A stretch of 64,000 nt of DNA from Hyaloraphidium curvatum SAG 235-1 (GCA_025558095.1 JAIVFI010000009.1:682001-746000), one strand, 5' to 3'; numbered from the stretch's first letter, positions 2,247-41,113 are shown. A program made the numbers and translations. The notes: a model not told the origin generated them from the letters alone.

Positions 2247-2889
2247 TCACGCATCAGGTGGTATTTCCAAGAATTGCTCTTCCCAAAGAGGTCGATTGCT
2301 GACTCTTTCGAATTGTGCACAAGGTCGCGGCTCCAACAAAGCCAGGACTATGTCGGTGCCCGTGTTGGAGCCATAAGATCTGTTCAGTGCCACCATCAGC
2401 GGGGTCATTCCGTCTTCGTTAAGACGTCTTGGGCGTCTTGGCTGCAACGAGCAACTTGACAGCCTTCGGATTCCCACTGGAGGAGCATGCAGCATGCAGT
2501 GCCGTCATCTCCGGGCTGTAATACAGGCTCGTGCCGTTGAAGTCTATCTTTCCTGGACTCTCAAGGAGGGTAAGGAGCACGGGCAACAAGTCCTCCCTCT
2601 GCGCGGCAACCATCAAAGCCGTCCACCCGTCCGGATCCCGGGTGCTGGGGTCCACTCTCGGATCATCGAGGAGCGCGCGGACAACTTCGACGTGACCGTT
2701 GACACATGCATTATAGAAGCCGGAACACGTTCCGTCCTCCCGATCGTTGCGGTTGAGCTCCGGGAGGGCGAGAAGCTCTTTGACCTTGGCGAGGTTGCCT
2801 TTGTAACACGCCTCTTTGAACCGTCAATCCACATCATCCAGGCTCAGGTCGCCGGAATCGCTCATCGCGGAAGTATACGAGTCGCTCAT
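2247..2889 (-). pseudogene. Degraded ankyrin-repeat gene, copy 1
   Basis: ATG at 2889, in-frame TGA at 2826-2824 (DVD*RFKEACYKG), then FYNACVNGHVEVVRALLDDPRVDPS and DGWTALM. Frameshift near 2425. Tandem paralogue of 1440-2203. Confidence 0.6.
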
Positions 2890-3162
2890 AGCGGAAGGCT
2901 AGGAGCGCAGACTCCGTGACTCCGTCCAAGATGTCCGGGGCCGGGGCCCATGCACTCCACGAAGTCGCCGCCACGGCCCAGAGGGAACCCGATTCCGGTC
3001 CACGGTATGGAGATCGGAAAGGCAGTTGAAGCGATGGCGTAGCAGTTGTTGAGCGGACGCTCGGGGATCTTTCGCGCGCGCGATGGGTGTTGACGGCGAG
3101 CAGCGCGCAGGGGGACAGTCGAAGAAGCTTCTCCCCCGCCCGCGAACCACTTGGCGCCCAAA

Positions 3163-4247
3163 ATGGCCGCGCCGCCGGCAGTTCAGAACGTCATCGTAGA
3201 GATTCCGCGGCCGCATGTTGCCCTCGCGCGGTTCAACCGGGCGGCGCAGCTCAACGCGTTCAACCTCGCGTTGCAGTGGGACCGTCTCCTTGGACTACCC
3301 GAACTCCGCTAATCTCTTCCTTCTCTCGGGTGAAACCTTTGCAAATGACACGTGCATAGCATGGACATGAAGGCGATCTACGACTGGTTCGCCACCAACG
3401 ACGACCTCCGCGTGCTGGTCCTGACCGGCGAAGGCCGCGCGTTCTGCGCCGGTTCGGACCTCGTCGAGCGGGCAACGAAGCCCGACGACGCGGCCAAGAA
3501 GGACCTAGACCCGAACGGCTACGCGAGCATCGTCATGCGGGATCTGAACAAGCCGATCATCGCTGCAGTCAATGGGATCGCGTTCGGCGGAGGGTGGATG
3601 TCTTTAGGGTTGCTTACCTTTGCTCCGGACCTGACCTCGAGTTGCCGTGGACAGGATGGAGATCTGCATGGCCTGCGACATCATCGTCGCCTCCGACAAA
3701 GCCACGTTCGGCCTCCCGGAGGCCAAGGTCGGCCTATTCGCCTCGGGCGGCGGCACGGCCAACCTCCACCGCCTCATCGGATACCACAACTCGATGAAGA
3801 TGCTCCTCACGGGCGACCCGGTCACGGCGCAGGAGGCTTACGTGGGTTTCGGTGTCATCTTGGTTCATCTGAGGACTGACTTTCACTTCCTCGTACAGCG
3901 CCTGAACCTCATCCAGGACGTCGTTCCCCACGCCGAGCTCATCCCCCGTGTCTTGGATCTCGCCTCTCGCATCGCCTCCAACTCTCCCGACTCGGCAAGT
4001 CCCACCTTCTCCCCCCTTTTCCGCGTGCTGACTTCCTTCCTACCGACAGCTCCGCGCCTCGAAAGCGCACGCTCGGTATGGCCGCGAGGTCGGGCACACG
4101 GCCAGCCAGACGGGGCAGAGGGCGCTGCCCGAGACCGAGGCGCTGTTCCGGGGGCCCAACTCCAAGGAGGGGCCCAAGGCGTTCGCGGCGAAGAGGAAGC
4201 CGGTGTGGGGCCCGGCCGAGCCGCTCGCTGGCACGAGCAGGATGTAG
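3163..4247 (+). CDS. Enoyl-CoA hydratase/crotonase family protein, spliced, C-terminal PTS1-like SRM
   Basis: LTGEGRAFCAGSDL, KPIIAAVNGIAFGGG and FGLPEAKVGL motifs. Four short introns, one of them GC-AG (3995-4049). Ends GTSRM*. Confidence 0.9.
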
Positions 4248-4253
4248 GGGAGA

Positions 4254-5123
4254 TCAAATCTTCGCGGGCTTCTGCCAGTCCACCCAGCCCGCGGCAATGA
4301 CCTTGTTCGTCTGCTTTGCGATGGCGAGCACTTTCTGCCCGGTCGAGTCCCAAACCTCGGAATGCCAATCCGTCCGTCCGCCCGTCGTAGGGCCCCTCCA
4401 GCTTCGCAACTGGAACGGGGCGTCGCCAGCGACCGGCACGGCGCGGATCTGGAGCTGCAAATCCAGCGTAACGTTGCGCTCGCCACCTCCGGTCCACAAA
4501 CTGGGGTCGCCCAGCATGTCGGTGACGGCGGCGAGGTCTTCGATGGGCATTGCCCCGGTGCTGGCATACTCGACCCACCCGCGGCCGGCGTAGCCGCGCT
4601 CCTGATCGTCGAGTGGCGGCCACCATGACGGGAAAGCGGGTATGCCGTCGTAGAGGACGCAAGCATCTTTGCTCGGGAGGGTGGGCGCCGGAAGGTGCGA
4701 CGGCAGGGAGGGGCCACCACGGCCCAGGTCCGCGAGAGTGGCCGTGCCGATAAAGATGCGTTCCTGTTTGCCGCTGCGCGCCTGCCGTAAGTCAATAGAG
4801 AGGACGAGCGACCCTCCTCCCTGGCGCAGCACGCCGACGGCGATTTCAGCCGTCCCGGGTAGCATTGGAGACAGAACAGAGCCAGACACCGTGACGACGT
4901 GTGGGAATCGAGCCGCCAGCCCGCGGCGGGCAGCCTCGTTCAGCGCAGCACGCACGAGCACCACGTTCATGTACCCGCCCCAGGCTGGGCCGCCGTAGGG
5001 GAAGTACGCGGCGAGGTCGCACTGCCAGACCGCAGGATCCTCCCCGTCGCCCCCGCGGAGGAATCGCGACGCGACAAACGCGCTCGGGGGATCCCGAGGA
5101 AGACCGGTTCCCACGGAGGTCAT
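4254..5123 (-). CDS. Thioesterase-like (double hotdog) protein, C-terminal PTS1-like AKI
   Basis: AWGGYM, VLRQGGG, VTLDLQLQIR and EVWDSTGQKVLAIAKQ fit the acyl-CoA thioesterase hotdog pattern. Confidence 0.7.
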   Translation of the reverse strand: MTSVGTGLPRDPPSAFVASRFLRGGDGEDPAVWQCDLAAYFPYGGPAWGGYMNVVLVRAALNEAARRGLAARFPHVVTVSGSVLSPMLPGTAEIAVGVLRQGGGSLVLSIDLRQARSGKQERIFIGTATLADLGRGGPSLPSHLPAPTLPSKDACVLYDGIPAFPSWWPPLDDQERGYAGRGWVEYASTGAMPIEDLAAVTDMLGDPSLWTGGGERNVTLDLQLQIRAVPVAGDAPFQLRSWRGPTTGGRTDWHSEVWDSTGQKVLAIAKQTNKVIAAGWVDWQKPAKI

Positions 5124-19848: not shown

Positions 19849-19931
19849 CGTACGTAGCCATCTTTTCAGTGACCAGGACAACATTTTCCCCGCCTATTGG
19901 CATGCTCCCCGGCTATAGACATCCTCCCCGA

Positions 19932-22424
19932 CTATTCCAGGTCCTGCTGGAGCGGTATCGTTCCCGTCCGGTCCGGCTGACGCGGCTCGAGCTGCTGCAT
20001 CGGCCCCGACCCCAAGAGCCAGTACCCCGCGTCGTCGTCCGAGCCCGCCGGCACGGCCTGCCTGCCAAACATGTTCCCCACGAGCACCTCCATGGCGTCG
20101 ACGTCCCCCAAGAGCACCGCCAGCGCCGCGCCGCCCCCCGCCGCCAGCACGGCCCGCGGACCCGACGCCGCCGGCGCCGGGGCGACCGCGCGCGCCGGCA
20201 GCGGGAACATCCTCGGCAGCGGCCTCTTTGCCACGAGCGCGACGGCCAGCGTGTGCAGCTTGGCGGCCGCCTCGTCGAGCAGCGGCGCGGTCCACGCGGG
20301 GGCTTCCCCGCCGCGGGCGGCGTAGTCGGCGAGGGAGGAGAGCGAGGCCAGCATGCGGTGCACGCACTCGCACGCCGCGGACGCCCAGCGGCGGTCCCAC
20401 GGCCGGTCCAGGAGCGGCTCGCCGCGCGCGGCCGCGAGGGAGGTCCGGGCGAGGACGGCGAGGCGGGACGAGAGGGCGTCGGTGCCCGTGCGGGCGGCGG
20501 GGTCGCCGGCCTCCGCGCGGCGAAGGAGCCGCGCGGCGCAGTAGAGGAGGTTGCCGAGGCCGACGCGGACGTCGGTGGCGGATAGCGTCGGGAACACGGC
20601 GATCTGGTAGAGCAGCAGGGCGAGGACCGAGAGGATCATCATGCCCGCGCGGAAGGCGCCGAAGGCGGGGTCCGCGAGGGCGTCGCCGCTGCCGAGGGTG
20701 ACGGCGATGTAGGTGACGGAGAACATGCGCCCCGCGTAGGGGTGCGGCAGCCAGTTCTGCATGCAGAAGCCGAGGATGCTGACGGGGACGAAGAAGGCCA
20801 GGGCAACGCCCGCGCGGCCCTGCTCGGTGCCGTACGGGAGCCAGGCGAGGTAGGCAAAGTAGCCCCACAGCACCGCCGCGCACGTGGCCAGCAGGCGGAG
20901 GCCGCTCCCGACCACCCCCGCGCCGATCGTGGGGGCCAGCAGAACGACGGCGCTCACGAGCAGCCAGTAGACGTGGTACCTGACAAAGGCCTCGCTCGTG
21001 CCGGGCAGGAAGGCCCACACCGATATGATCGCGAAGGCAAAGGCGCGTTTGAATCCGAACCTGCCCGCGTCGGACGAGATGGCCTGCTGCAACAGGTACA
21101 GCCCGTCGATGACCAGCCGACCGGGCTTCCACCCGCCGGAAGACGCGGGCCTGACGACGTCCGGATCGTCCGCCTTCTGCTGGGGCTGTTGCTGCGCCTG
21201 TGTGCGGCGCGCGCGGTCGAACGCGTAGAACCTGTGGCCCCCGTTGCGTGCCCCCACGAGATCCTGCGCCGCCTCGGCCACCCTGTCCGCGGATTCGAGC
21301 ACCGTGTACAGCGCAAGGGCGCGGGGATCGTCCGCGGCCCCGGCGCCCCCGCGCGCCGCCAGGACGGCCTCCCTGTCGTCCGCGATCCGCGCCCTGACGG
21401 CGTCGAGCTGCTCCGCGCCGCCGAGCCTGCGGGGGCGGGCGTAGTTCCAGAACGCGGGCAGGTACGGGGGCTGGTCGACGACCAGGGCGTCGTGCACGCT
21501 GTCGAGCAGCGCCGCGACGGTGGGGTTGGCCGCGCCGGGCCGCATGCGCCGGCCCAGCTCCGCGAGGGCGGCGGCGAGCAAGGCCATGCGCCGGGGTGCG
21601 TCGCGGAAGAAACCGATGTCCGTGGGGCAGCCACGGGCGTCGGCGAGCAGGTCGACGGCGTCGTCGCGGGCGGCGGAGGCGGCGGCGTGCTCGGGAGGCG
21701 AATCCGGCCCGATCCCGCCCGAGCCGATGGCCCGGAGGGAGCGCGTCAGCCTCACGGCCGACTCGCGGGCGGCCTCGGTGGCGCTCTCGGGCAGCACGAG
21801 GAGGCCGACGCCGAGGTAGAGCGCCACCCCGGTGAGCAGGACGACCATGATGCTGTCGAATTCGGCGCGCACGGGGACCGCGTCGAGCTCGAGCACGGCT
21901 ATTGTCGGCTCGACGGTGACGGCGAACATCATGGTGACGAAGAAGCCGAGCGCGCCGAGCGGGCCGTTGAGGCGCGCGTACTGCGCGCCCGAGCTGGCCC
22001 ACACGACGCAGCCGATCCACGCCGTGAGGACGGCGGCGCGGGCGTACGGTGAGGTGCCGCCGTTGTTGTTGTAGGCGACGACCCACAGCTGGCCGAGCAG
22101 GCTCAAGCAGAGGCCGCCGACCATGCCGAGCGCGGCGACGGCGGCGACGACCAAAACGCGGAACGGCGAGCCGGCGGGCAGCACGAACTGCGCAAACACG
22201 GCAAACTGGACGAGCGCGCCGGGCGACGGGCGGAACCACGCGATCAGCAGCTGCGCCCACACGAGCAGCAGTGCCTTCAGCACGCGCACGGCGTCGCGCC
22301 GCCGCGGGGGCCACCGCACGCCGCGCCGCCAGCCGGTCGACGCGGAATCGTGTGCCGCCGCCGCCGCGAGCAGCTCGGCCGCCGCCGCCTCGGCAGCCGC
22401 GGTCGGGCCCGCCTCGCCGCCCAT
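19932..22424 (-). CDS. FUSC/ArAE-like membrane protein, convergent paralogue of 17330-19848
   Basis: Shares GGTSPYARAA, RFGFKRAFAF...VWAFLPGT and EPLLDRPWD with its neighbour. Confidence 0.75.
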   Translation of the reverse strand: MGGEAGPTAAAEAAAAELLAAAAAHDSASTGWRRGVRWPPRRRDAVRVLKALLLVWAQLLIAWFRPSPGALVQFAVFAQFVLPAGSPFRVLVVAAVAALGMVGGLCLSLLGQLWVVAYNNNGGTSPYARAAVLTAWIGCVVWASSGAQYARLNGPLGALGFFVTMMFAVTVEPTIAVLELDAVPVRAEFDSIMVVLLTGVALYLGVGLLVLPESATEAARESAVRLTRSLRAIGSGGIGPDSPPEHAAASAARDDAVDLLADARGCPTDIGFFRDAPRRMALLAAALAELGRRMRPGAANPTVAALLDSVHDALVVDQPPYLPAFWNYARPRRLGGAEQLDAVRARIADDREAVLAARGGAGAADDPRALALYTVLESADRVAEAAQDLVGARNGGHRFYAFDRARRTQAQQQPQQKADDPDVVRPASSGGWKPGRLVIDGLYLLQQAISSDAGRFGFKRAFAFAIISVWAFLPGTSEAFVRYHVYWLLVSAVVLLAPTIGAGVVGSGLRLLATCAAVLWGYFAYLAWLPYGTEQGRAGVALAFFVPVSILGFCMQNWLPHPYAGRMFSVTYIAVTLGSGDALADPAFGAFRAGMMILSVLALLLYQIAVFPTLSATDVRVGLGNLLYCAARLLRRAEAGDPAARTGTDALSSRLAVLARTSLAAARGEPLLDRPWDRRWASAACECVHRMLASLSSLADYAARGGEAPAWTAPLLDEAAAKLHTLAVALVAKRPLPRMFPLPARAVAPAPAASGPRAVLAAGGGAALAVLLGDVDAMEVLVGNMFGRQAVPAGSDDDAGYWLLGSGPMQQLEPRQPDRTGTIPLQQDLE

Positions 22425-22544
22425 GGGGATCGGGTGGGGGATCGCAAGGGACTGGACCCATTTGAGGGACGCAACCGTAGCATCCAGAACGCAATTTATA
22501 ACCTCCGAACCACGACACCCTCCGCCACCCCGCGGCCGGTGGAA

Positions 22545-25500
22545 TCAATAGTGATCCACGCACGGCCTCATCCTCCTGTTCCTCATCCCCAGCCACCCGA
22601 ACGTCACGGGCGACGCCCTGTACGCCCCCGTGCCGTGTTTCGGCCAGTCGTTCATGTCCCACGCGCCGTTGCGGCGGTCGTAGAACGGCTGGCTCCAGTA
22701 CCCCTCCGAGAACTGCACGTACCCCAGATCGGCCCCCTCGGCCCCGCACACGATCCGGTTCTCCGGCGTCCGTGCGCCGGCGAGCACCTCGACCCTCCTG
22801 CACCCAGCACCCTCGAGCAGCGAGGTGAACCCTCCGTCGTCGGGCCCGCCGCTGCCCTTGGCGCCGCCGCAGGGCCAGTAGTACGACCTGACCACGGTGC
22901 CCGTCGTCTGCCCGTTGGCGTAGAGCCGCCAGTCGTCGGGCTTGGGCTCCCTGTACCGGTACCACGGCGCGCTGAAGGGCGGGAAGGTGCCGCCGAGGGG
23001 GTCCTCGTCGCCCCCGGACCAGGCCCAGGAGGGGTTGCCGGCGTACTCGAACGTCGAGCTGTCCTTGTCGCCGCACCTTGGACGGGGGCGGGGTCAGTCC
23101 GCCGCGGGACGGCACCCGCGGGGGCGGGACCCACCAATCGGGACAGACGCCGTACGCGCCGGCCTTGGACGTCGCGCACGACTGCGTGATGCCGTCGGTG
23201 GGCACCCACGAATCCCACTGGTCCACCGTGCACACGTCCCAGAACGAGGGTATGACCTGCCTGAGGTACCTGCGCCCCGCCGCGGCGGCCACGGCGCCGG
23301 CGACCTCGCCGGCCTTGCCGAGGGCGTAGTCGCCGCTGATGCCGATGCCCGAGGCCGCGTCCATGGCGTGGAAGTAGTACAGCCGCATGCGGTCCTTGTT
23401 GATGTCGTTCAGCAGCCTGTCGCGGAAGACCTTGAGGGTGGCGTCCAGCGAGCTCTTGAGGTAGGCCTTGAGCTTGTCCCCGCCCTGGTTGACCTCGGTC
23501 GCGGGCTTGAAGCTGAGCTCGCCCTCCTGCCAGAAGACGTAGTAGAACTCCTGCCTGCTCGGCGACGTGTTGTCCATGATGGGCACGATGCTGTCCAGCG
23601 AGGAACCCAGCAAGGCCAGCAGCGGTCCCCACAGCGGGCTGCCCGCCGCCCTGTCGCCGGCGCCCACGTCCACCCCGTTCCGCGCCCCGGCGTCGGCCAG
23701 CGCGGCGGTCGCCAGCGCGTCCAGGAACGCCCAGTGCACCATCCCGGCGAACCCGAACCCGAACCTGAACACGGTCCCGTCCGCCTTGCCCTGCCCCGCG
23801 AGCCGCTCCAGCGCCCCGAGCAGCGAAGCCTGCATCCCGTCGAACAGCGGCGCGACCAGGTTGTCCGCCGCCGCGAGCCACCCCTGCGAGCTCCCGAGCC
23901 AGGCGATCTCGCTGCGCACCTCGCACGCGGCCTCGCACCGCAGCGCGTCGCCCAGGGCCGCCTTGGCGTCGGCGGTGATCCCGCGGTCGCAGGTGCCGGA
24001 AACGAACTGCATGCAGCCCTGCGCGATGCCGGGGCACTGCTGCGGCGCCTGGCGCCCGACCTTTTCCGCGGATGGCGGCACCGCGCGGGCGGTCTTGCCG
24101 CCGCAGTCGCACGCCCCCGAAAACGCGCGGTCCCATGCGGCGGCCCACTCCACCAGCGCCCCGCTCTCCAACGTCTCCTTGGACCCGTACTCGGGCCTCA
24201 GGTCCGCGGTGCGCCCCTTTGTCGCCGCGCACGAGGCGTATGCGTAGGTCTTCAGCAGCGCGCCGTCCTCGGTGTAGGCCCTGTACCCGCTCAGGCCGCT
24301 GTCCTCGCGGAAGGGCACCCAGTCGGGGAACGAGTCCCGGTACTCGCCCGAGTTCTTGTCGCTCCCGAGGTTGACCTTCCACCCCTTGGGCACCTGCGCG
24401 ACGGCCGCGAGGAAGCCCGTCGGCGCCGGGCCGCAGGTCGAGGTGCGCGCGTCGATCCAGCAGCTAGCGCACTCGCCGGGGGAGGAGACCTTGGCCCCCG
24501 CGGGCTGCTTGCCGGAGCACGTGGCGGTGCCGTCCGCGTGGGCGTCGTATTCGGTGCGGACGACGGGCAGGCACAGGCCCGTCTCGAACACGGCGGCGTC
24601 GCAGGCGGTGCCGGCGGGGCACTCGGCCGTGAAGACGCCCTTGTCCAAGCAGGGGGTGCAGGTGCCCGGGGGCACCGCGAGCTTGGCGGTGTCGAAAAAG
24701 GGGCCGGGGACGGCGTTGTCCTTGTTGGCCGCCTGGCCGGCCGATGGCGTGCCGGCGCCCTTGGGGCACGCGAACTTGGGGTCGCGCAGGGGGGTCGGCT
24801 TGTCGACGCAGATGCCGAGGACCATGTCGCAGGTGTAGGGCGCGTCGCAGGGGTTGTAGGACACCTTGCCTGTGAGGGTGGAGGGGAAGATCAGAAGCTT
24901 GGCGAAAAAGGGAGCGCCGGTCCGCCCACCGTAGTACAGAGTATCGGTGTTGGTGACGACGCACGTCGAGCCCTTGCCCCCCAAGGAGCGCCGCTTGATG
25001 CCGCTGCCGCCGCCCGCGTCCGAGGCATTCCGCGGCGGCACGCGCGCGTTGCGCCACGCGGCGACGATCTCGGCCGCGCGGTCGCAGTTCCTGTTGAGCG
25101 GCGCAACGGCGGGCAGCAGCTCCGAGTTTGCCGGGATGCACTGCCCGCAGACAAAGACGTGGTCGCACTGGCAGACGATGCCGTGCGAGGCGAGGCCGGC
25201 GTAGTCGCGCGTGCAGCTGGCGTTGGAGCCGGGGAGGAGCTCGGCCAGGGGCAGCACGGCGGGGCCGCCCTTCTCGCCGAAGCACTCGACGACGGAGGCG
25301 CAGGTGCCGTTCGTGCAGCAGCCCGAGGCGCAGGCCGCCGGCGCGCTGCAGGCGGCGCCGTGTGGAGCGCCGAGCCCGGCGGGGAAGCACGCCGACGAGT
25401 GCGCACACGCGCCCGCGAGGCAGCAGCCTGAGTCGCACTGCTGCCACGTCGACGCGGAGCAGCCGGCGCCGCGGTTGGCGCCTCCCGGCCAGCACACGGC

Positions 25501-25704
25501 GTGCGGGGCGCAGGTGCCGCCGACGCAGCACCCCGTCGTGCACTCCGAGTACGTCGACGCCGCGCACGCCTCGCCGAGCCGCGACGCGGAGAGCGCGTCG
25601 GCCGCCGCGATGGCCGCCTGCGCGTCCGGCGCGCGGGGGACGGGCCCGCTGGCAACCGCGGCGACCAGCGCCGCGAGGAAAACGGCGATGGCGGGAAGAC
25701 GCAT
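22545..25704 (-). CDS. Large secreted Cys-rich protein of unknown function (about 1,030 aa)
   Basis: Signal peptide MRLPAIAVFLAALVAAVAS, three CS...C.xGCC..G.C repeats, dibasic KRR site. One intron at about 23136-23078 joins CPDW to CGDKDS. Confidence 0.7.
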
Positions 25705-26099
25705 TTCGCGGTGTGGCCCGTGGCTCCGCCGCCCGATATAAGCCGCCGCCTCGAGCCGCCCGGGGCGCGGGGGGAACTTTCCGAGTGGGGCGGAGGGGCG
25801 AGCAGGCGCTGGCGCAGCGCGGGCTGGGGGCCCCTGGCTGAACCAAAAGCCGATTATTCCCCCGACGGCCGACCCGTCTATATTGGCCAATCGCCGGGAT
25901 GGATTACGGCCATGTTGCTCCGGGTTCCACCGCGCCCTCGGCCGCCGGGCCTGGACGGGACATCGGTGCGGGAGACCGCCCGGGACCCCGGCATCAGAAG
26001 CGCCGCCCCACGCAACCAGGCACTTTCTTGTCCTTGGCGATCTTGGCCTCGAGGCGTGCATCGCAGCATGGAGCCGAGTCCATGCGGCCGCAGGGTCGG

Positions 26100-33562: not shown

Positions 33563-34018
33563 TGTTTGGTGGCGACAAGGAGGGTCCGCACGCGAGGCCG
33601 GAGAGGCACACTGAGGCGGGCCCTTGGTGTTCGCCCTCCCGGTACCGAAGAAAAGCACGCGGTGTACCGGTCCCCTGTGGTGCTCCCGGCCGTGCCTCGG
33701 AGAGAGGACAGAGCGGACGCGTCACGCGTCTCCCGCGGGATCCGGCGAGTTCACGCACGCCGGCCCGTCGGAAGCGGTGCCGGCGCCAAATATGCGCTCA
33801 TGGCTCGCGGAACCGGAACAGAGCCCCTCTTCCGGAAGCGGGGCTGGCCGGAAGTCCGCGATGTGGCTGGCTCACACATGCGAAGTGTGGCGCAGCGCCT
33901 GGGTCCGGGGTCGAAGTTCACGTCCACCGCAAATCCGCTCTTCTCTTGCAGTCCAGGAGAGCTACAGGGATGGGATGTGACGGATCAAGAGTCAGACAGC
34001 ACGTTGATGTTCAAGAGG

Positions 34019-37000
34019 TCAAGACACAAGAAGGCCCGCGCCGCGAAGCTTGTCCCTGACCGCTTCCGCCGCCGCCGCGCATTCGGACGCCTTTGCCGGC
34101 GCCTTTTCCCAGCCCCCACCGGCAGAGACTCGGTCCCCCAGCATCCTCATCAACAGGTCCAGCACGATCGGCGCGAACCACCTGAGCGCCGCGGTTTGCC
34201 GATCGCCCGCCGCTTGTCCGGCGGGGAGGTAGCCGCTCCTGATCCTCTTGACCACGACCGGCAGACCCTCCAGACCGCGCTCGAGCTCCCCGCCTTCCTG
34301 GCCCGTGAGTCGCTGGACCAGCGGCACGGCCAACTCGGCCTGCTCAGAAATGTCCTTGAACTGCTCCACGTTGTCGCCGATGATCCCCATGACCTGCTTC
34401 AGCGCCGTGAAGATCGTGTTGCCCCCCGCGTCTGCCTCCGAGTCCTGCCTTGCCCGCCGCAGCATCGCGACGCCCGATGCGATCTGCTCGTCCGTTTCTG
34501 CCTCGAGCAGCAGCGCACGACCCTGCTCCAGCAGGGCAGCCACGACCGGGTGGTGGGCGTCCTCGATCCAGATGGCGCCAAACATGCACCGCGTCATGAG
34601 CACAAGCCACGAGGTGATGCCGTCGCGCGCGCGCTCCATCTGCTCCTCGTCCATCTGCGCGCCCATCCTCAGCGACCGGAAGAGGCGAGGGTCGATGCCC
34701 GAGAAGGGCCTGTCGAGCACGCAGAGCAAGTCGAACTCGAGGCCGCGGCACTCGTCGAGCGAGAGATTCAGGAGGGGTCCATGCCCGGCTCGGGACAGGT
34801 CCGACGGCGCCTTGGATCCCGTGCGCAGCACGACAAAGTCGAGGCCCGAGGCGTCGATGAGCCGGCGCGCCGCATCCGCGTTGCGGCACTGAAGCACGGG
34901 CGGTGAGTCCCAGAGCGCGGAGCGGATCACGGCATCGACGGCGAAGTCGTCAAAATCCGACTTGTAGAAGGGCTTGAGCCAGGTCTGCAGGACGGCGTCG
35001 AGCACCTTTAGCACCCCGACGGGGCAGCGGAAGTTAATCGAGAGGGTGACCGAGTGGTGCTCGAGCTTGTCCCTGGTGACCGTGCACGCCTCGGCCAGGG
35101 CGGTGCGCACGCCCGTGCGGCGCGCCGCGGACTCCCTCCCGACACTCTGCTTGCTGTCCAGGCCGACGATCACCGATCCCGGCTTGCCGCTCGAGAGCGC
35201 CAGGATCTTGATCTGGAGCGGGGTCAGCGACTGCGCCTCGTCGATCAGCATGGGGCCGAAGAAGCGGGCCAGCCCCGCCGCGCCGCCGCCGGGCTGCGTC
35301 CACGTCTCCTTGAGGAACTCCCAGAGGTCGGCCTCGTCGCGCAAGCCGCGCTCGGTCTTCCAGGAGCCGTACCACGCGAGGTAGAAACGGTCGACCCAGA
35401 GACCCGCAATGCGGTCCGTGTCCGTCTCTCCGCGGGTCCGGGCAGCCGAGGCAAAGTCCGAGTACGTGACCCTCGGCCATCCCTGGGGCCAGAGCTGGTC
35501 TATCCGCTCGCGAACGGTCTGCACATTGATCTCGGGGTACGAGCGGAGCACTTGGTCTCGGAGGCGGGAGGTGGGGAGGAGGACGACGGCGCCAGGGATG
35601 GCCTTGGCGATCTCGGACAGAACTGCGGCGGACAACAGTCAGAGCGGGCCTAAACTGGAATTTAGTGCGAATGCGCCCACCTGTCGTCTTGCCGTTACCG
35701 GCCGAGCCTTTGATGAAGAGGGCAACGTTGCGGCGGCAACCAAGCTCGATAGCCGCGGCCTCCTGCCTCGTCAGGACCGCCGACGTGCGGCCCGTGTCCG
35801 GATCCGCCTCGATGAGCATGTCCAGGTTGCCGAGGAACCTCCGCGGGAGGAAGAAGTTGGCGCCCATGTCCGGGTTGGCCGCAATGTCCTGGCGGAAGGC
35901 AAGGACGATGTCGCGCACGCGTTCGGCGTGTCCACCGAGACGAGCATCCAGTTCCACTTCGCCCTCGGGGCTTCCAGCAGCCTCTGTGGAGATGACGACC
36001 CCGGCAAATTCTATCTGCTCCAGGATCCCGCCAGCGTGGGCGATCGTCTTGGAAAAGCCCTGAAAAAGGGTGCGCTGAGCATGGGAAGCTTTCTACGAAT
36101 GAGTTGGCTCACCTTGTGGTTCAAAACGATAGCCGTGATGAGGTAGGTGTTAGCGGCCAGCTCGACGTAGAAGATGCGCTCCTTCTTGTTCAGACGACCC
36201 TCAAAGACGCGGTCCGCGACCTTTTTCTGGTGCTGGTGGAGCGCACGACCTTCGAACATGGCCATGACCTTGTCCTTCGCGTCGATGGCCAGCAGCTCGC
36301 GGTACGTGTGCGCAGTCAGGAGCACTTGCAGGGCCGCCGCCTTGCCAGGTCCACGAGGCTTGGCAGTCTCGCCGGTGATGCTCCTCGACGGAGCAGGGGG
36401 CTGCGATGATTGTCCGCCGACGCGGCTCTGCTTCGCGTAAAGGCTGCCATTCTCCCGCACGAGCTCCTTGCCCTTGCCAGATCCACGTCCTGCAGGTCCG
36501 GAAGACGCAGGCCTCGCCGCGAAGATAGATCGCACCAGATCGTTCGAAATGCCCTTCGAGACCTCGCCAAGAAGTGCTCGGAACCAGGCGAGAAGGGTCG
36601 TGTACGCGGCTTCCGCTTCGCTGTTGCTGTCTGCCTTCTTGTCCGAACCAGTAGACGGAACCCGCGCCGACGGCGGCAGCCATCCTTTGGGGTGAACAAG
36701 ATCGCAGTCGTCGACGGTACAAGCTTGCCCGCGGGGACACGGCTTGGCAACGCGTGCACCGGTCGCTGGCCGGCTCTCGGCCGACTGAGCGAGTTGTCGC
36801 TCGCACTCCACGAGGTCTGCAGTGAGCCTCTTTTCCAAAGCCAAAGCCTGTTTGGTCCGTCCTCCAGGCATTGCGAGCAGCTCGGCAAGGTTCGTCTGTG
36901 CCGTGCTCAACAAGGTCAATGCCCTCTTCGGGAGCGGAGACGGAAGAGCGGCAAACTCGTCGCGCTGCAGCTCCGCGTATTCCAGCAAAGCGCGTTTCCG

Positions 37001-39766
37001 AAGATCCGGTTCCGAACTCTTGGTCCGCTCCAACACCGCTCGCAAATCCGTGGCGGCCTGCGCGAGTTGGCCAAGCCGTCGCCTGACCACGGCTCGTTCA
37101 AGGTAAAGAGCGATGTTCTGAGGCTGAATTCGAATGCTCTGTGAGGCAGACGCCAAGGCCTCCTCCAAACGACCATCTTTGGCGAGCTTTTGCACGAGCG
37201 CTGCAAGATCCTTTGTCTCCGACTCCTTGGACGACTCTTTGGACGAATCCTTCGACTTGCGATCTCGGTCCACCGCGTCGTGTTCCTTTCCGATCTCGAG
37301 CTCGACGCGGACCACGGTGAATCGTCGCCCGTCGGCCGTCTCGACAAAGAAGCCCAGACTCGGATCTCGCAAGGCCTCCGCCGTCCATTTCGGCATCGAA
37401 CGGAAGCCATAGTACTTTCCATCGGCCCAGACGTCGGCCGAGACGGGAAGGGTCCCCTCGAAAGGCACGTCCAAATCCTCGTAGGTGTCCGACTTCGTGC
37501 TGAGGAGCGAGAAATCAACGAGGTACGTCCGCTTGAACGTCTTCGGAACCCGAGGTGTCTGCTCCCCAGACAGGTCGTAGAACCCAATGAACATGCCCAG
37601 GTCATCTCCCGATTTCTGGAGCAGGAAGCGGAAGCTGAGCTTCGGCTCGCCTCGCCACTTCAGCGCGGGCCCGAGGTTCGACGCACTCCCATCGGCCAGC
37701 ACCTTCGCAACGTCAAAAGTGACATGGTGCACAAGTCGGTCGTTGCCGTTGAAGTCCTCCCCCACGAGCTTCGAACACGCGAGCCGGAGCTCAATGTCGG
37801 GCTTCTTCGCGACCTTGGCGAGCTCCTGCGCGGTCACGAGAAAGTCGCCCTTCTTCTTGATGTCCTTCTCCGTCGCCAACACCTTGTCCAGTTCCGCCCG
37901 GATCGTCCGCTCGTTGCGCTCCCGGTAGGCTCTCAGGCTCAGGAATTCGGTCCAGCTGGCCGGCAGATCAAGGTCAATCATGGTCAGCCTGAAGCGGATC
38001 ACGAGGCGGCCCCGTTTGGAGAACTCGGGATGAGCCAGGGGATCGGCCAACGACACCGGAATCATGACGGAAAAGAAGCGGCTCTGGCCAAGGGTGTGCC
38101 GGCCTTCCCGCTGGGGATGCTCCACGCCCCGCTTGTCGACCGCGGAGAAGGTCCACTTCATGGCCATCCGGAAACCCTGCGGCGGGATTCGGCGCAGGCC
38201 GCAATGAACTTGAGCGTGGAGACCGTAGCTGGTTTGGTCCCGAAGCACGTAGAGGGCGACGTCCTGCCAGTTGAACGGCAGCGAATCTGCAGGTCCCGAA
38301 ACCGGCATTTCGTAGTCCACCGAGATCTCGTCTCCGCTGACAGAGGGCTCTTGGAGCGGAGGCCAAGGCTCCTTCAAGATCCTGTACGCCCGCCGCACCT
38401 TGACGGCCTTCCAAAAGGACGCGAGGCGGCTGGCGGCATCATGTCGTCTTGCGCGCTCCTCAAGTGCCTTGCCGTATTCTGTCCGCGCCCGATACCCCTT
38501 CCAGGTCGCCGAAAGCCGAGTAGCAGAACGTTCTCGCAGGGCCCGGCGTGCTTCCACAGCCGCCCTCCGTCGTCGACGTTCGACGTGGCTCCTGTAGGCA
38601 CTGGCGATCTTTTCGGCCGCCACTTCCTCCGCAGCAATGCGCTCCAGCTCCGCAGCCTCGAACTCCTGCCTCGCCTCGGGAAGCAGGCCCGAGAAGCGAG
38701 TCCGGCGGTCACGTTCCTTGACGATCCGCATTGCATCCAAGTAATCGCGCAACCAGACACAACGAGGCTCGTTCGTTGTCCGTGTCCGGCGCAGAATGCG
38801 GTCCCATTCGACGTCCAGCAGTCTGGTATTCATTCTGTCCAGTATCGTCCGCACTTGGATACGTTGAACCAAGGCCGATTGTGGATACGCAGGACTGTTG
38901 AGAGTCGGCCAAAGTTGTTCGTCCAATTTGATGAAATTGTGCGCCAAGGTCACTGCAAGTTCACGCCGTTCGGCGCTCAGTACGTCGTAGAGATGCAGAA
39001 CGCAACGGGCGTCAGTCGCCAGCTTCGCAAGCTGCCCCTCTGTCCAGCCGTGCTCCTTGACGCGATCAGCCAGCTGAAATCTTTCACACAGGGTGTCATA
39101 GATGTCCAGAGCTATCGAACCGGAAGCCATGGAATGTCTCGGCCCCTTGGCATCCGCGAAAACTGCCAAGCGGAGACAAAGGTCCGAGCAAACAGCCGAA
39201 TGCAGTCCCGAGCGCACGTACGAAACCAGAGCCGGAAGGTCGTGGTCCAGCATCCCATAATGTGACCCATCCGGCCGCGCAGGCCCGTTCCCAATACAGA
39301 AACGGTCAATCGGAATCTCGGGAACTTCCTCAAAGGCACCATCCCGCGCCACCCTCTCCCGCACGGTTCGAACGATTGTGGCGTCATCGGCGACGACTCC
39401 AAACACCGCCTGGACCTTCGTGTCCAAGCAAAGCCCGGCGAGCGCGGCGAGGTCCTCTGCCTCGTCCGCCCACGCGTCCTCCAGGGCCTCGACCCAATCG
39501 CTCCCATCGGCCGGTGGGTTCGCGGGCGACGGCAGCGTCTCCGCATCTCTGCCCAGCTTCTTCAGCGCGCCGAGCAGGCGAGGCAGCGGGCGACACGCGG
39601 CCGCCCATTTCTTGCGCTCCGTGCCCGACGCGTTCGGCGGAGCCGGTGGCCACGCCTTGAGCGCGTTCAGGGCCGCGACTGCCTCGGCCGCGGGTGATTT
39701 CCGCTTCGCTTTCGGCAGCGATGTCGGAGAATTGCGCTCATCGGCGCCGTCGGCCGTGTCGTTCAT
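34019..39766 (-). CDS. IQ-MATH-TPR-CCCH ZnF-RelE-like-UvrD/SF1 helicase (TRANK1-like), about 1,878 aa
   Basis: Introns 36112-36060 and 35680-35623 join three ORFs in frame. Helicase motifs GSAGNGKTT, LIDEAQ, LDSKQSV, LSINFRC, CRGLEFD and VLMTRC. Confidence 0.8.
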
Positions 39767-39960
39767 GCCTCGCCACTGCCTTCACGACGCTCGGGCGCAC
39801 GGGCACCAACTCGCGTCGACGCTACCCCGATCATCACCTAAGTCGGCCTCATCGCCATGAAAAGACCATTCTTGAATTGTACCGTTACGTAAGTATCTTG
39901 ATTCACAGTACCTTGAAGTGGGGATGCTCCATTGCGCGTTTCTGCTCCCCACGATCTATG

Positions 39961-41113
39961 CTACTCCAACCTCCCGCGCTCAACCTCCTCCGTTGCCCAT
40001 TTCACCACGTGCAGATGATTGTACTTTCGAGCAACCTTGGCTATCAACCCGGCTGATCCCGTGGGGATGGCGTCGACAGAGTCGAGCGCCTCCATCATAG
40101 CCGCCAAGTTGCCCTTTTCGGCTGCCCCCAGCAGTCCCGCCACGGAGCAGTGAACTCCATAACCCTTCAGAAGCGCAACAATCCGCATCTGTCCTTCCTG
40201 CACGGCGAGGTCCATGGCATAGCTAAACACGGGCTGCGGTGCGTCCATCGCGGCCCTCGCGGAGACTTCGATCAGATCCATGGGAAGCTCCGACTGCTTC
40301 TCAAAGAGGAAGCGCATGAAAGTCTCGTGCCCGCGAACAGCAGCCGCCACGACGATGTGCCGCCATCCGGCCGGGGCAAGAACGGCCGAGCACCGCAAGT
40401 GCTCCAGCAGCAGCCTGAAGACGGCCACGTTGCCCGTGTTCGCCGCGAGATAGAGACATCGGTCATTAATGCGGCATCCCCAGCTCAGAAGAGTGGAGAC
40501 AACTTGGTCACAACAGAAGCTGTCGGCACGCACCGCACGCTCCAGGGCGTGCTCAGGGTCAAACGGCACGCCCAGCTTTTGCATCGAAGCAATCATGTCC
40601 ACGAAGCCGTACTCCATGCTGACATGGAAGGCAAAGCGGAGGTCCTGGGGCTGGAGGCGCCGTGCGGCCGTGGAAACGATCCAGTGCGCCAGAGCGCGGT
40701 AGTGCAAAGGAGGCTGGAATGCCGTACTCAAGTGGTTCAGCACCGATTGCAACTCTTCGGGGGACCGTCGAGCAAGGACGTTGCAAGCCGCTCCCTCGAG
40801 GTCCAGGGAGATGAGCACCGTTCGGTTGGAGCGCCTGAGCATCTCCGCCCGGGCACCTGCACCGCACAGGTAGAAGGGGTGTTGCGCCAGAAGGTGCGGC
40901 AGCATAAAGTTGCGGTTAAAGATTTCCTCCAGGATGCTGCAGGAGACCCGTCATGCCACGTCCCGCGCGGGAACCAGGGGTTGCGACCGACCGAGTGCGG
41001 AGTTCCGAAGGCAGGCCGCAGAAGCTCTGCAACGAGCACAAGGCACGGATCCGAAGGCATGTGATGGAGGCATTTGGAAGCGGTTTGCCGCGAGCGGCGT
41101 CGTTCCGCGCCAT
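39961..41113 (-). CDS. F-box-like + ankyrin-repeat protein
   Basis: Splicing out 40991-40937 gives SFCGLPSELRTRILEEIF. Ankyrin-like LYLAANTGNVAVFRLLL, AAAVRGHETFMRFL and LAVQEGQMRIVALL. Start codon uncertain. Confidence 0.6.

Follow-up and report, generated by a model that had tools for sequence, protein, structure and literature searches.

A predicted RelE/ParE-fold domain joined to a UvrD-like helicase in a 1,878-residue multidomain protein of the fungus Hyaloraphidium curvatum

The locus and its gene model

The chytrid-like fungus Hyaloraphidium curvatum, classed in the fungal Monoblepharomycota, encodes a large protein in which a predicted RelE/ParE fold directly precedes a compact UvrD-like superfamily 1 (SF1) helicase. 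The gene lies on the minus strand of a 64,000-nucleotide (nt) stretch of strain SAG 235-1 (contig C9:682001-746000), here called the window, and all coordinates are window positions. Three minus-strand open reading frames (ORFs; 36011-39766, 35034-35957 and 34019-35635) are joined by removal of two introns into a gene for 1,878 amino acids (aa), as a first-pass annotation of the sequence had proposed (Table 1). The motifs named in that annotation are all where it placed them: IQ-like motifs at aa 387, 418 and 448, DDLGMFIG at 721, YYGFRSM at 785, a CCCH finger at 1010, LQVLLTAHTYREL at 1146, LITAIVLNHK at 1209 and a Walker A motif at 1336.

A 12.8-kb contig of the public run X1 skips exactly these introns. 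Over 33950-39850 it has exactly two joints relative to the genome (35623-35680 and 36060-36112), both CT..AC on the plus strand, that is, GT..AG on the gene strand, and it is otherwise identical. The frames agree: 1218 aa from exon 1, 126 aa from exon 2, a split Val codon and 533 aa from exon 3 make up 1,878 aa. Because the joints are precise and the H. curvatum genome contains no intron-less copy of the gene, we take the contig to come from spliced RNA. It reaches past the gene on both sides, and therefore does not prove a single clean transcript; neighbouring transcripts are probably merged in it, because it runs ~5.1 kb past 39850. The gene is real, spliced and transcribed.

The first-pass annotation had allowed that the helicase might be a gene separate from the MATH-TPR-RelE-fold part. 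We reject this gene-model artefact as very improbable on the spliced contig, which places both parts on the same transcript: the contig overruns the gene at both ends and its run is only guessed to be RNA, but both introns are excised precisely with frames kept, neither half is viable as a stand-alone gene because intron 2 interrupts the helicase just past Walker A and the last helix of the RelE fold lies beyond intron 1, and a metagenomic homolog (P0003) has the same architecture in one uninterrupted ORF.

The position of intron 1 is conserved in paralogs and metagenomic homologs, with read-through across the intron site (marked by a slash) giving 'HK/VS..' in P0013 and P0024 and 'DHK/VG..' in L009. 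Because an intron after ...(N/D)HK is common to paralogs and metagenomic homologs, this gene family appears to be resident in eukaryotes and not a contaminant.

The deposited NCBI/JGI model (P0001, hypothetical protein DFJ74DRAFT_532297, 1816 aa) has the same two introns as the RNA contig, and its residues 1-1736 equal the spliced 1,878-aa model. It also contains a third 'intron' at 34393-34447 (minus strand, 55 nt), so that the final 80 residues of the model are read in the wrong frame and are low in complexity. We rejected this intron: the RNA contig retains it, and the unspliced tail is conserved in P0002 (the paralog on contig C11), P0003 and P0007. The deposited C-terminus is probably wrong. 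Analyses spanning exon junctions used P0001, and the true C-terminal tail was analysed as exon 3 alone.

Table 1. Gene parts and predicted protein features, in window coordinates (AF2, AlphaFold2; pLDDT, predicted local distance difference test score)
Feature	Position	Strand	Remarks
Whole coding region	34019..39766	-	3 exons, 1,878 aa + stop; ORFs, spliced contig, P0001 100% identical over exon 1
Exon 1	36113..39766	-	aa 1-1218
Intron 1	36060..36112	-	53 nt, GT..AG, phase 0, after ...LNHK; X1 contig joint
Exon 2	35681..36059	-	aa 1219-1344 + first base of codon 1345
Intron 2	35623..35680	-	58 nt, GT..AG, phase 1, straight after Walker A (GSAGNGKTT); X1 contig joint
Exon 3	34019..35622	-	aa 1345-1878; stop 34019-34021; continuous contig coverage
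N-terminal region, aa 1-380	38627..39766	-	poorly conserved: 21-24% identity to P0002, P0003
Three IQ-like motifs, aa 383-465	38372..38620	-	Pfam IQ at aa 412-431
MATH/TRAF-like domain 1, aa 477-599	37970..38338	-	
Long linker, helical, coiled-coil-like, aa 603-664	37775..37960	-	pLDDT ~90; AF2 helices 138-174, 181-188, 190-199
MATH/TRAF-like domain 2, aa 672-833	37268..37753	-	
TPR repeats, aa 862-934	36965..37183	-	TPR_9 + 11 other Pfam TPR families
CCCH finger C-x5-C-x4-C-x3-H, aa 1010-1026	36689..36739	-	ligand conservation
RelE/ParE-fold core (predicted), aa 1144-1218	36113..36337	-	beta-alpha-alpha-beta-beta-beta-beta
C-terminal helix of RelE-like fold, aa 1219-1237	36003..36059	-	encoded by exon 2; model helix 93-110 within HigB1/HigB-aligned range
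Compact UvrD-like SF1 helicase core, aa 1314-1700	34556..35774	-	sequence motifs, Pfam, Atlas; intron 2 inside
C-terminal tail, aa 1701-1878	34022..34555	-	conserved in P0002, P0003, P0007 (alignment)

A predicted RelE/ParE fold directly before a helicase

The first-pass annotation assigned a segment of about 75 aa to the RelE/ParE fold, and an AF2 model and fold searches support this. The model, made for aa 1128-1335 from 10 sequences, has a mean pLDDT of 61.6; its residues 20-110 (pLDDT 72-85) are predicted to form a beta-alpha-alpha-beta-beta-beta-beta arrangement followed by a helix. The model has the elements of the RelE/ParE (BECR) fold, beta1-alpha1-alpha2, an antiparallel sheet of 3-4 strands and a C-terminal helix as in HigB types. 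The closest structural matches, HigB1 on the ribosome and Cami1, are active mRNA interferases rather than ParE. A strongly conserved motif, FLPRxxLGNLDMLxE, lies in the stretch 35745-35990 (aa ~1242-1323) that links the RelE-like fold to the helicase Q-motif, where model confidence is low.

The helicase predicted directly after this domain is indeed present, on the same spliced transcript, and is UvrD-like with a full set of SF1 motifs. Motifs I, Ia, II (DExQ), III, IV, V and VI occur in order and are conserved in the family; the helicase motif sequences are LTRQE (Q-motif-like), GSAGNGKTT, LLPTSRL, MLIDEAQS, GLDSKQS, INFRCP, CRGLEFD and LMTRCMF. Pfam UvrD-helicase (PF00580) scores 21.5 bits here (cut-off 23), 34.1 in the paralog P0002 and 23.1 in P0007, and ESM Atlas features give 0.95 to UvrD clusters. 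PADLOC found weak matches only, to GajB, Nhi and AbiO, and a PDB sequence search with exon 3 gave no match. The short core (~390 aa) precedes a conserved 178-aa tail.

A small family with a constrained core

An exhaustive phmmer search with the core as query, against 1.84 billion representatives, found 21 proteins, including three weak helicase-only matches; at E<=0.001 nothing lies outside the small family except these three. The members are the H. curvatum paralogs P0002, P0009 and P0006 and a handful of metagenome/Logan sequences, some of them full length (for example P0003, 1859 aa). The combination of modules is found almost nowhere else among these representatives.

The H. curvatum genome has exactly four loci with the RelE-like domain, which lies directly upstream of the helicase each time. 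Identity to P0002 and P0003 is 60% in the RelE-like domain and 57-64% in the helicase, and 20-36% in the N-terminal region, MATH domains and TPRs. Judged from these comparisons, the RelE fold is strictly coupled to the helicase, and the two appear to be the constrained core of a protein whose N-terminal modules diverge fast.

The paralogs differ in what precedes the core. In P0009 (C12:555909-557938, 860 aa model), an N-terminal MYND zinc finger (Pfam E 1.1e-8) replaces the IQ/MATH/TPR region, and its subfamily includes the AT-richer metagenomic relatives P0007, P0027, P0028 and P0029. The paralog at C12:584663-588066 (L003/L009) has IQ-like motifs and one MATH-like domain, with no TPR or CCCH finger seen in the ORFs inspected; it has an additional intron within the RelE-like domain after ...GRQKL, and its intron after DHK is open in frame.

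We also found a different UvrD-like helicase (P0025) at 2513-4613 of an AT-rich, eukaryote-like metagenome contig in ENA (L018, 7,797 nt). Just upstream is an apparent RelE-like remnant, likely split by an intron (KILISHH...; ILETKLDKGQRILY...FVAKHD). With this contig as a lead, the module of RelE fold and UvrD helicase may occur in other eukaryotic lineages.

Sequence relations and active site of the RelE-like domain

Across eight aligned family sequences, 13 of ~75 positions are invariant, including the charged or polar K1181, K1182, E1189, R1197, H1217 and K1218. The active sites of ribonuclease (RNase) members of the fold include K52, K54, R61, R81 and Y87 in RelE and E46, R65, H83 and Y84 in YoeB. 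In a MAFFT alignment with the Escherichia coli toxins, K1181 aligns to RelE K52 and YoeB K49, and R1197 to RelE R61 and YoeB R65, and H1217-K1218 end the last strand, as do YoeB H83/Y84 and HigB 'THKEY'; these equivalences are drawn from alignments at 12-20% identity, without residue-level superposition. An active RNase is plausible, given that K1181, R1197 and H1217 are invariant and lie at places like those of RelE and YoeB; the invariant K1182 also falls at or near such a place.

Several results weigh against this. Pfam gives no match at E<=10 to the RelE-like segment in any of 10 family members, a PDB profile search of the module finds only ribosomal protein L27 (E 0.5), and a word search with the domain profile finds only a 39-aa fragment of the same family. 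Comparison of the profile with a 23-member YoeB family by hhalign gives P 0.026. In 401 Pseudomonadota genomes the domain profile has 9 matches at E<=0.05, with ~20 expected by chance. The general base E46 of YoeB aligns with Q1178, which is non-acidic and variable. The fold call itself depends on the AF2 model, with only 10 sequences and a mean pLDDT of 61.6 (72-85 in the domain), and ParE-type proteins have the same fold and are not RNases.

NCBIfam and PADLOC scans of the segment found no toxin family, a PF06769 search of the H. curvatum genome found no match, and a word search with a profile of the core module found family members only, with no bacterial relatives. Comparisons of the domain profile with E. 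coli toxins by hhalign are non-significant (YoeB E 0.022, RelE 0.14, HigB 0.32). Matches to PF06296 (RelE) in the same 401 genomes are mostly stand-alone ORFs of ~100-200 aa, with no helicase fusion evident among them. Thus the fold in the earlier proposal of a RelE-type ribonuclease is supported, membership in a RelE sequence family is not, and the active-site pattern is conserved only in part.

The domain may instead be catalytically dead, with an accessory role in loading or regulating the helicase through binding to RNA, ribosomes or proteins. In that case the whole protein would be a scaffold or a factor in RNA metabolism or quality control, and not a nuclease effector. This explanation deserves serious weight, and we consider it somewhat unlikely: a dead domain would not be expected from the invariance of so many positions, charged and polar residues among them, from the alignment of K1181 and R1197 with residues that serve catalysis or substrate binding in RelE and YoeB, or from top structural matches that are active interferases.

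Modules ahead of the core

A Pfam scan of aa 1-380 gave no family match. The three IQ-like motifs that follow are all present where they had been predicted, and the third is the best conserved in the family (P0002, P0003 and P0024). Only one of them (aa 412-431) passes Pfam IQ (PF00612), and marginally (20.6 bits, cut-off 20.3), so that the calmodulin input proposed with them is putative.

One clear and one probable MATH domain had been claimed, and AlphaFold models and fold searches support both as eight-stranded antiparallel beta-sandwiches of TRAF-C type. Pfam MATH (PF00917) does not match, and no Pfam family matches aa 470-660 or 660-850 at E<=10. The predicted TPRs are also borne out, with 12 Pfam TPR families on the same stretch (E 5e-7 to 8), the best of which, TPR_9 (E 5.2e-7), falls just below its cut-off (30.0 bits against 35).

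The CCCH finger keeps four of four ligands in four family members (P0001, P0002, P0003 and P0024), which upholds the pattern seen in the first-pass annotation. Pfam zf-CCCH does not match at aa 1010-1026. We take its spacing to be that of Nab2/ZC3H14-type RNA-binding fingers. After the finger comes a low-complexity, disordered linker.

Neighbouring genes

The flanking genes encode an ankyrin-repeat protein and a Na+/H+ exchanger, and no cognate antitoxin gene was found next to the RelE-fold gene, which is a eukaryotic single-gene fusion. The ankyrin-repeat ORF (39961-40905, minus strand, Ank_2 E 7e-7) is directly upstream on the same strand. Elsewhere in the window, an ORF of 2,055 aa at 19894-26061 (minus strand) lies in the most GC-rich part (72-75% GC) and matches no Pfam family at E<=0.001.

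Comparison with known systems

RelE-type toxins are hallmark components of the toxin-antitoxin and defence systems of prokaryotes. By fold, the closest systems are the ribosome-dependent mRNA interferases HigB, YoeB and RelE of the RelE/ParE superfamily (BECR fold). Unlike these, the H. curvatum domain has no detectable sequence-family membership, no antitoxin partner and no counterpart of YoeB E46, and it sits inside a 1,878-aa eukaryotic protein.

The first-pass annotation pointed to RelE-SF1 helicase fusions in prokaryotes, and these are backed by a 2026 preprint and by fold matches in the ESM Atlas. The helicase adjoining Tiamat type I-K has an N-terminal RelE-like domain directly before a UvrD-type helicase (preprint 10.64898/2026.09.30.754977). 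Bacterial UvrD helicases in the Atlas align with our model of the RelE-like domain plus linker (template modelling (TM) score by query 0.42-0.49, over 121-146 residues), and a PF06296 RelE cluster aligns with it at TM 0.68. The prokaryotic fusions share the order of an N-terminal RelE-like domain and then a UvrD-type helicase, but the bacterial proteins are 338-959 aa long and lack the MATH, TPR, IQ and CCCH modules of the fungal protein. No sequence similarity of the fungal protein to bacterial fusions is detectable by phmmer, by the core-profile word search or in the 401 Pseudomonadota genomes.

Two other effectors invite comparison. Cami1 (CARF-RelE), an accessory of type III CRISPR, is prokaryotic and has a cA4-binding CARF domain as its regulator, not an ATP-driven helicase. 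The group III Schlafens (SLFN11/13/14 type) follow the same logic as that proposed for the H. curvatum protein, a eukaryotic protein with an endoribonuclease ahead of its SF1 helicase. Their nuclease is a Schlafen core, whereas the putative fungal one has a predicted RelE/BECR fold. Pfam SLFN-g3_helicase scores 29.8 bits in P0007 (cut-off 24) and 15.8 in this copy, in which no Schlafen core (AlbA_2-type) domain was matched, so that it does not qualify as a group III Schlafen.

Compared with the MATH adaptors TRAF, SPOP and USP7, the fungal protein lacks RING, BTB and USP partner domains as well as a Pfam MATH match. Animal TRANK1 is a large eukaryotic protein with TPR/ankyrin repeats and a C-terminal UvrD-like helicase, and is alike in being large and in having TPRs and such a helicase. 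TRANK1 is among the virus-induced genes in published lists. None of the 21 phmmer matches is TRANK1-sized. In the literature we found no paper that names both TRANK1 and RelE, and nothing on the domain structure of TRANK1, including the RelE-like module that the first-pass annotation placed ahead of its helicase. A 2025 survey of RelE/ParE toxins, in which the word 'helicase' does not occur, lists just 13 BECR-fold genes from eukaryotes, every one of them a toxin-antitoxin fusion (PMC11980606). Fusions of a RelE fold with an SF1 helicase, and RNase-helicase effectors, are already known; what is new is the undescribed eukaryotic multidomain setting.

Proposed function

We tentatively propose that the gene encodes an RNA-cutting and unwinding effector with an active RNase, a reading drawn from sequence and models to which we give a probability of about 0.45. 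One cytoplasmic multidomain protein of 1,878 aa would consist of a constrained core, in which a RelE/ParE fold of HigB/YoeB/RelE type is fused directly in front of a compact UvrD-like SF1 ATPase/helicase that ends in a conserved tail, and ahead of this core a set of fast-diverging adaptors (N-terminal region, IQ motifs, two MATH domains separated by a long helix, TPRs, CCCH finger and disordered linker). The adaptors may recruit partners or oligomerise, as TRAF-like MATH domains with a coiled coil do. The CCCH finger and the helicase may bind nucleic acid, with RNA at or close to ribosomes as the most likely target. The ATP-driven helicase would position or unlock the RelE-like domain, which would then cleave mRNA or rRNA and shut off translation, possibly as a stress, surveillance or anti-parasite response.

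We favour this model because the invariant K1181, R1197 and H1217-K1218 fall at RelE-family active-site places, and because the RelE-like domain is always just upstream of the helicase (at all four loci) in a core that is far better conserved than the adaptors. It also seems the best explanation because the spliced contig joins all three exons with every SF1 motif intact, because bacterial UvrD helicases align to the model of the RelE-like domain plus linker, and because E. coli RelE cuts mRNA in the A site of eukaryotic ribosomes (cited in PMC11980606). Against an effector role, the neighbours are housekeeping genes and no evidence connects the gene with infection or stress. Of the first-pass annotation as a whole, the gene structure and most of the domain architecture are borne out by splicing, folds and conservation; the ribonuclease activity, the defence role and the Ca/calmodulin input, the last with a single marginal IQ motif, are putative.

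UvrD-like SF1A helicases are typically DNA motors, a further point against an RNA-directed effector. The protein could instead be a DNA-directed machine, a UvrD-like DNA helicase in repair, recombination or the control of replication conflicts, with the RelE/ParE-fold domain acting ParE-like on a topoisomerase or as an adaptor for DNA ends or proteins. The helicase motifs and the Pfam and PADLOC matches, which are to DNA helicases of UvrD, GajB, Nhi and AbiO type, would suit such a role, as would the shared fold of ParE toxins. It is nevertheless improbable: the top fold matches are RNases that depend on the ribosome, the CCCH spacing presumably marks an RNA-binding finger, and core repair factors would not be expected to form a lineage-restricted, paralogous family whose N-termini evolve fast.

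The RNA-directed effector model also has a stronger form, in which the protein would serve innate immunity or ribosome surveillance as an active RelE-type ribosome-dependent mRNA endonuclease, gated by the SF1 helicase and wired to TRAF-like (coiled coil with MATH), TPR and calmodulin-binding inputs. This is unlikely as a complete account. If true, an early-diverging fungus would have kept a direct architectural link between bacterial toxin/defence modules and animal-type TRAF signalling.

The finding is tempered by the tiny size of the family and by an activity that is predicted only. If the RNase-effector model is true, the protein would represent a new eukaryotic coupling of nucleic-acid sensing to translation shut-off, parallel to Schlafens and Cami1. 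The H. curvatum protein offers a tractable test of whether RelE-type chemistry operates on eukaryotic ribosomes in vivo.

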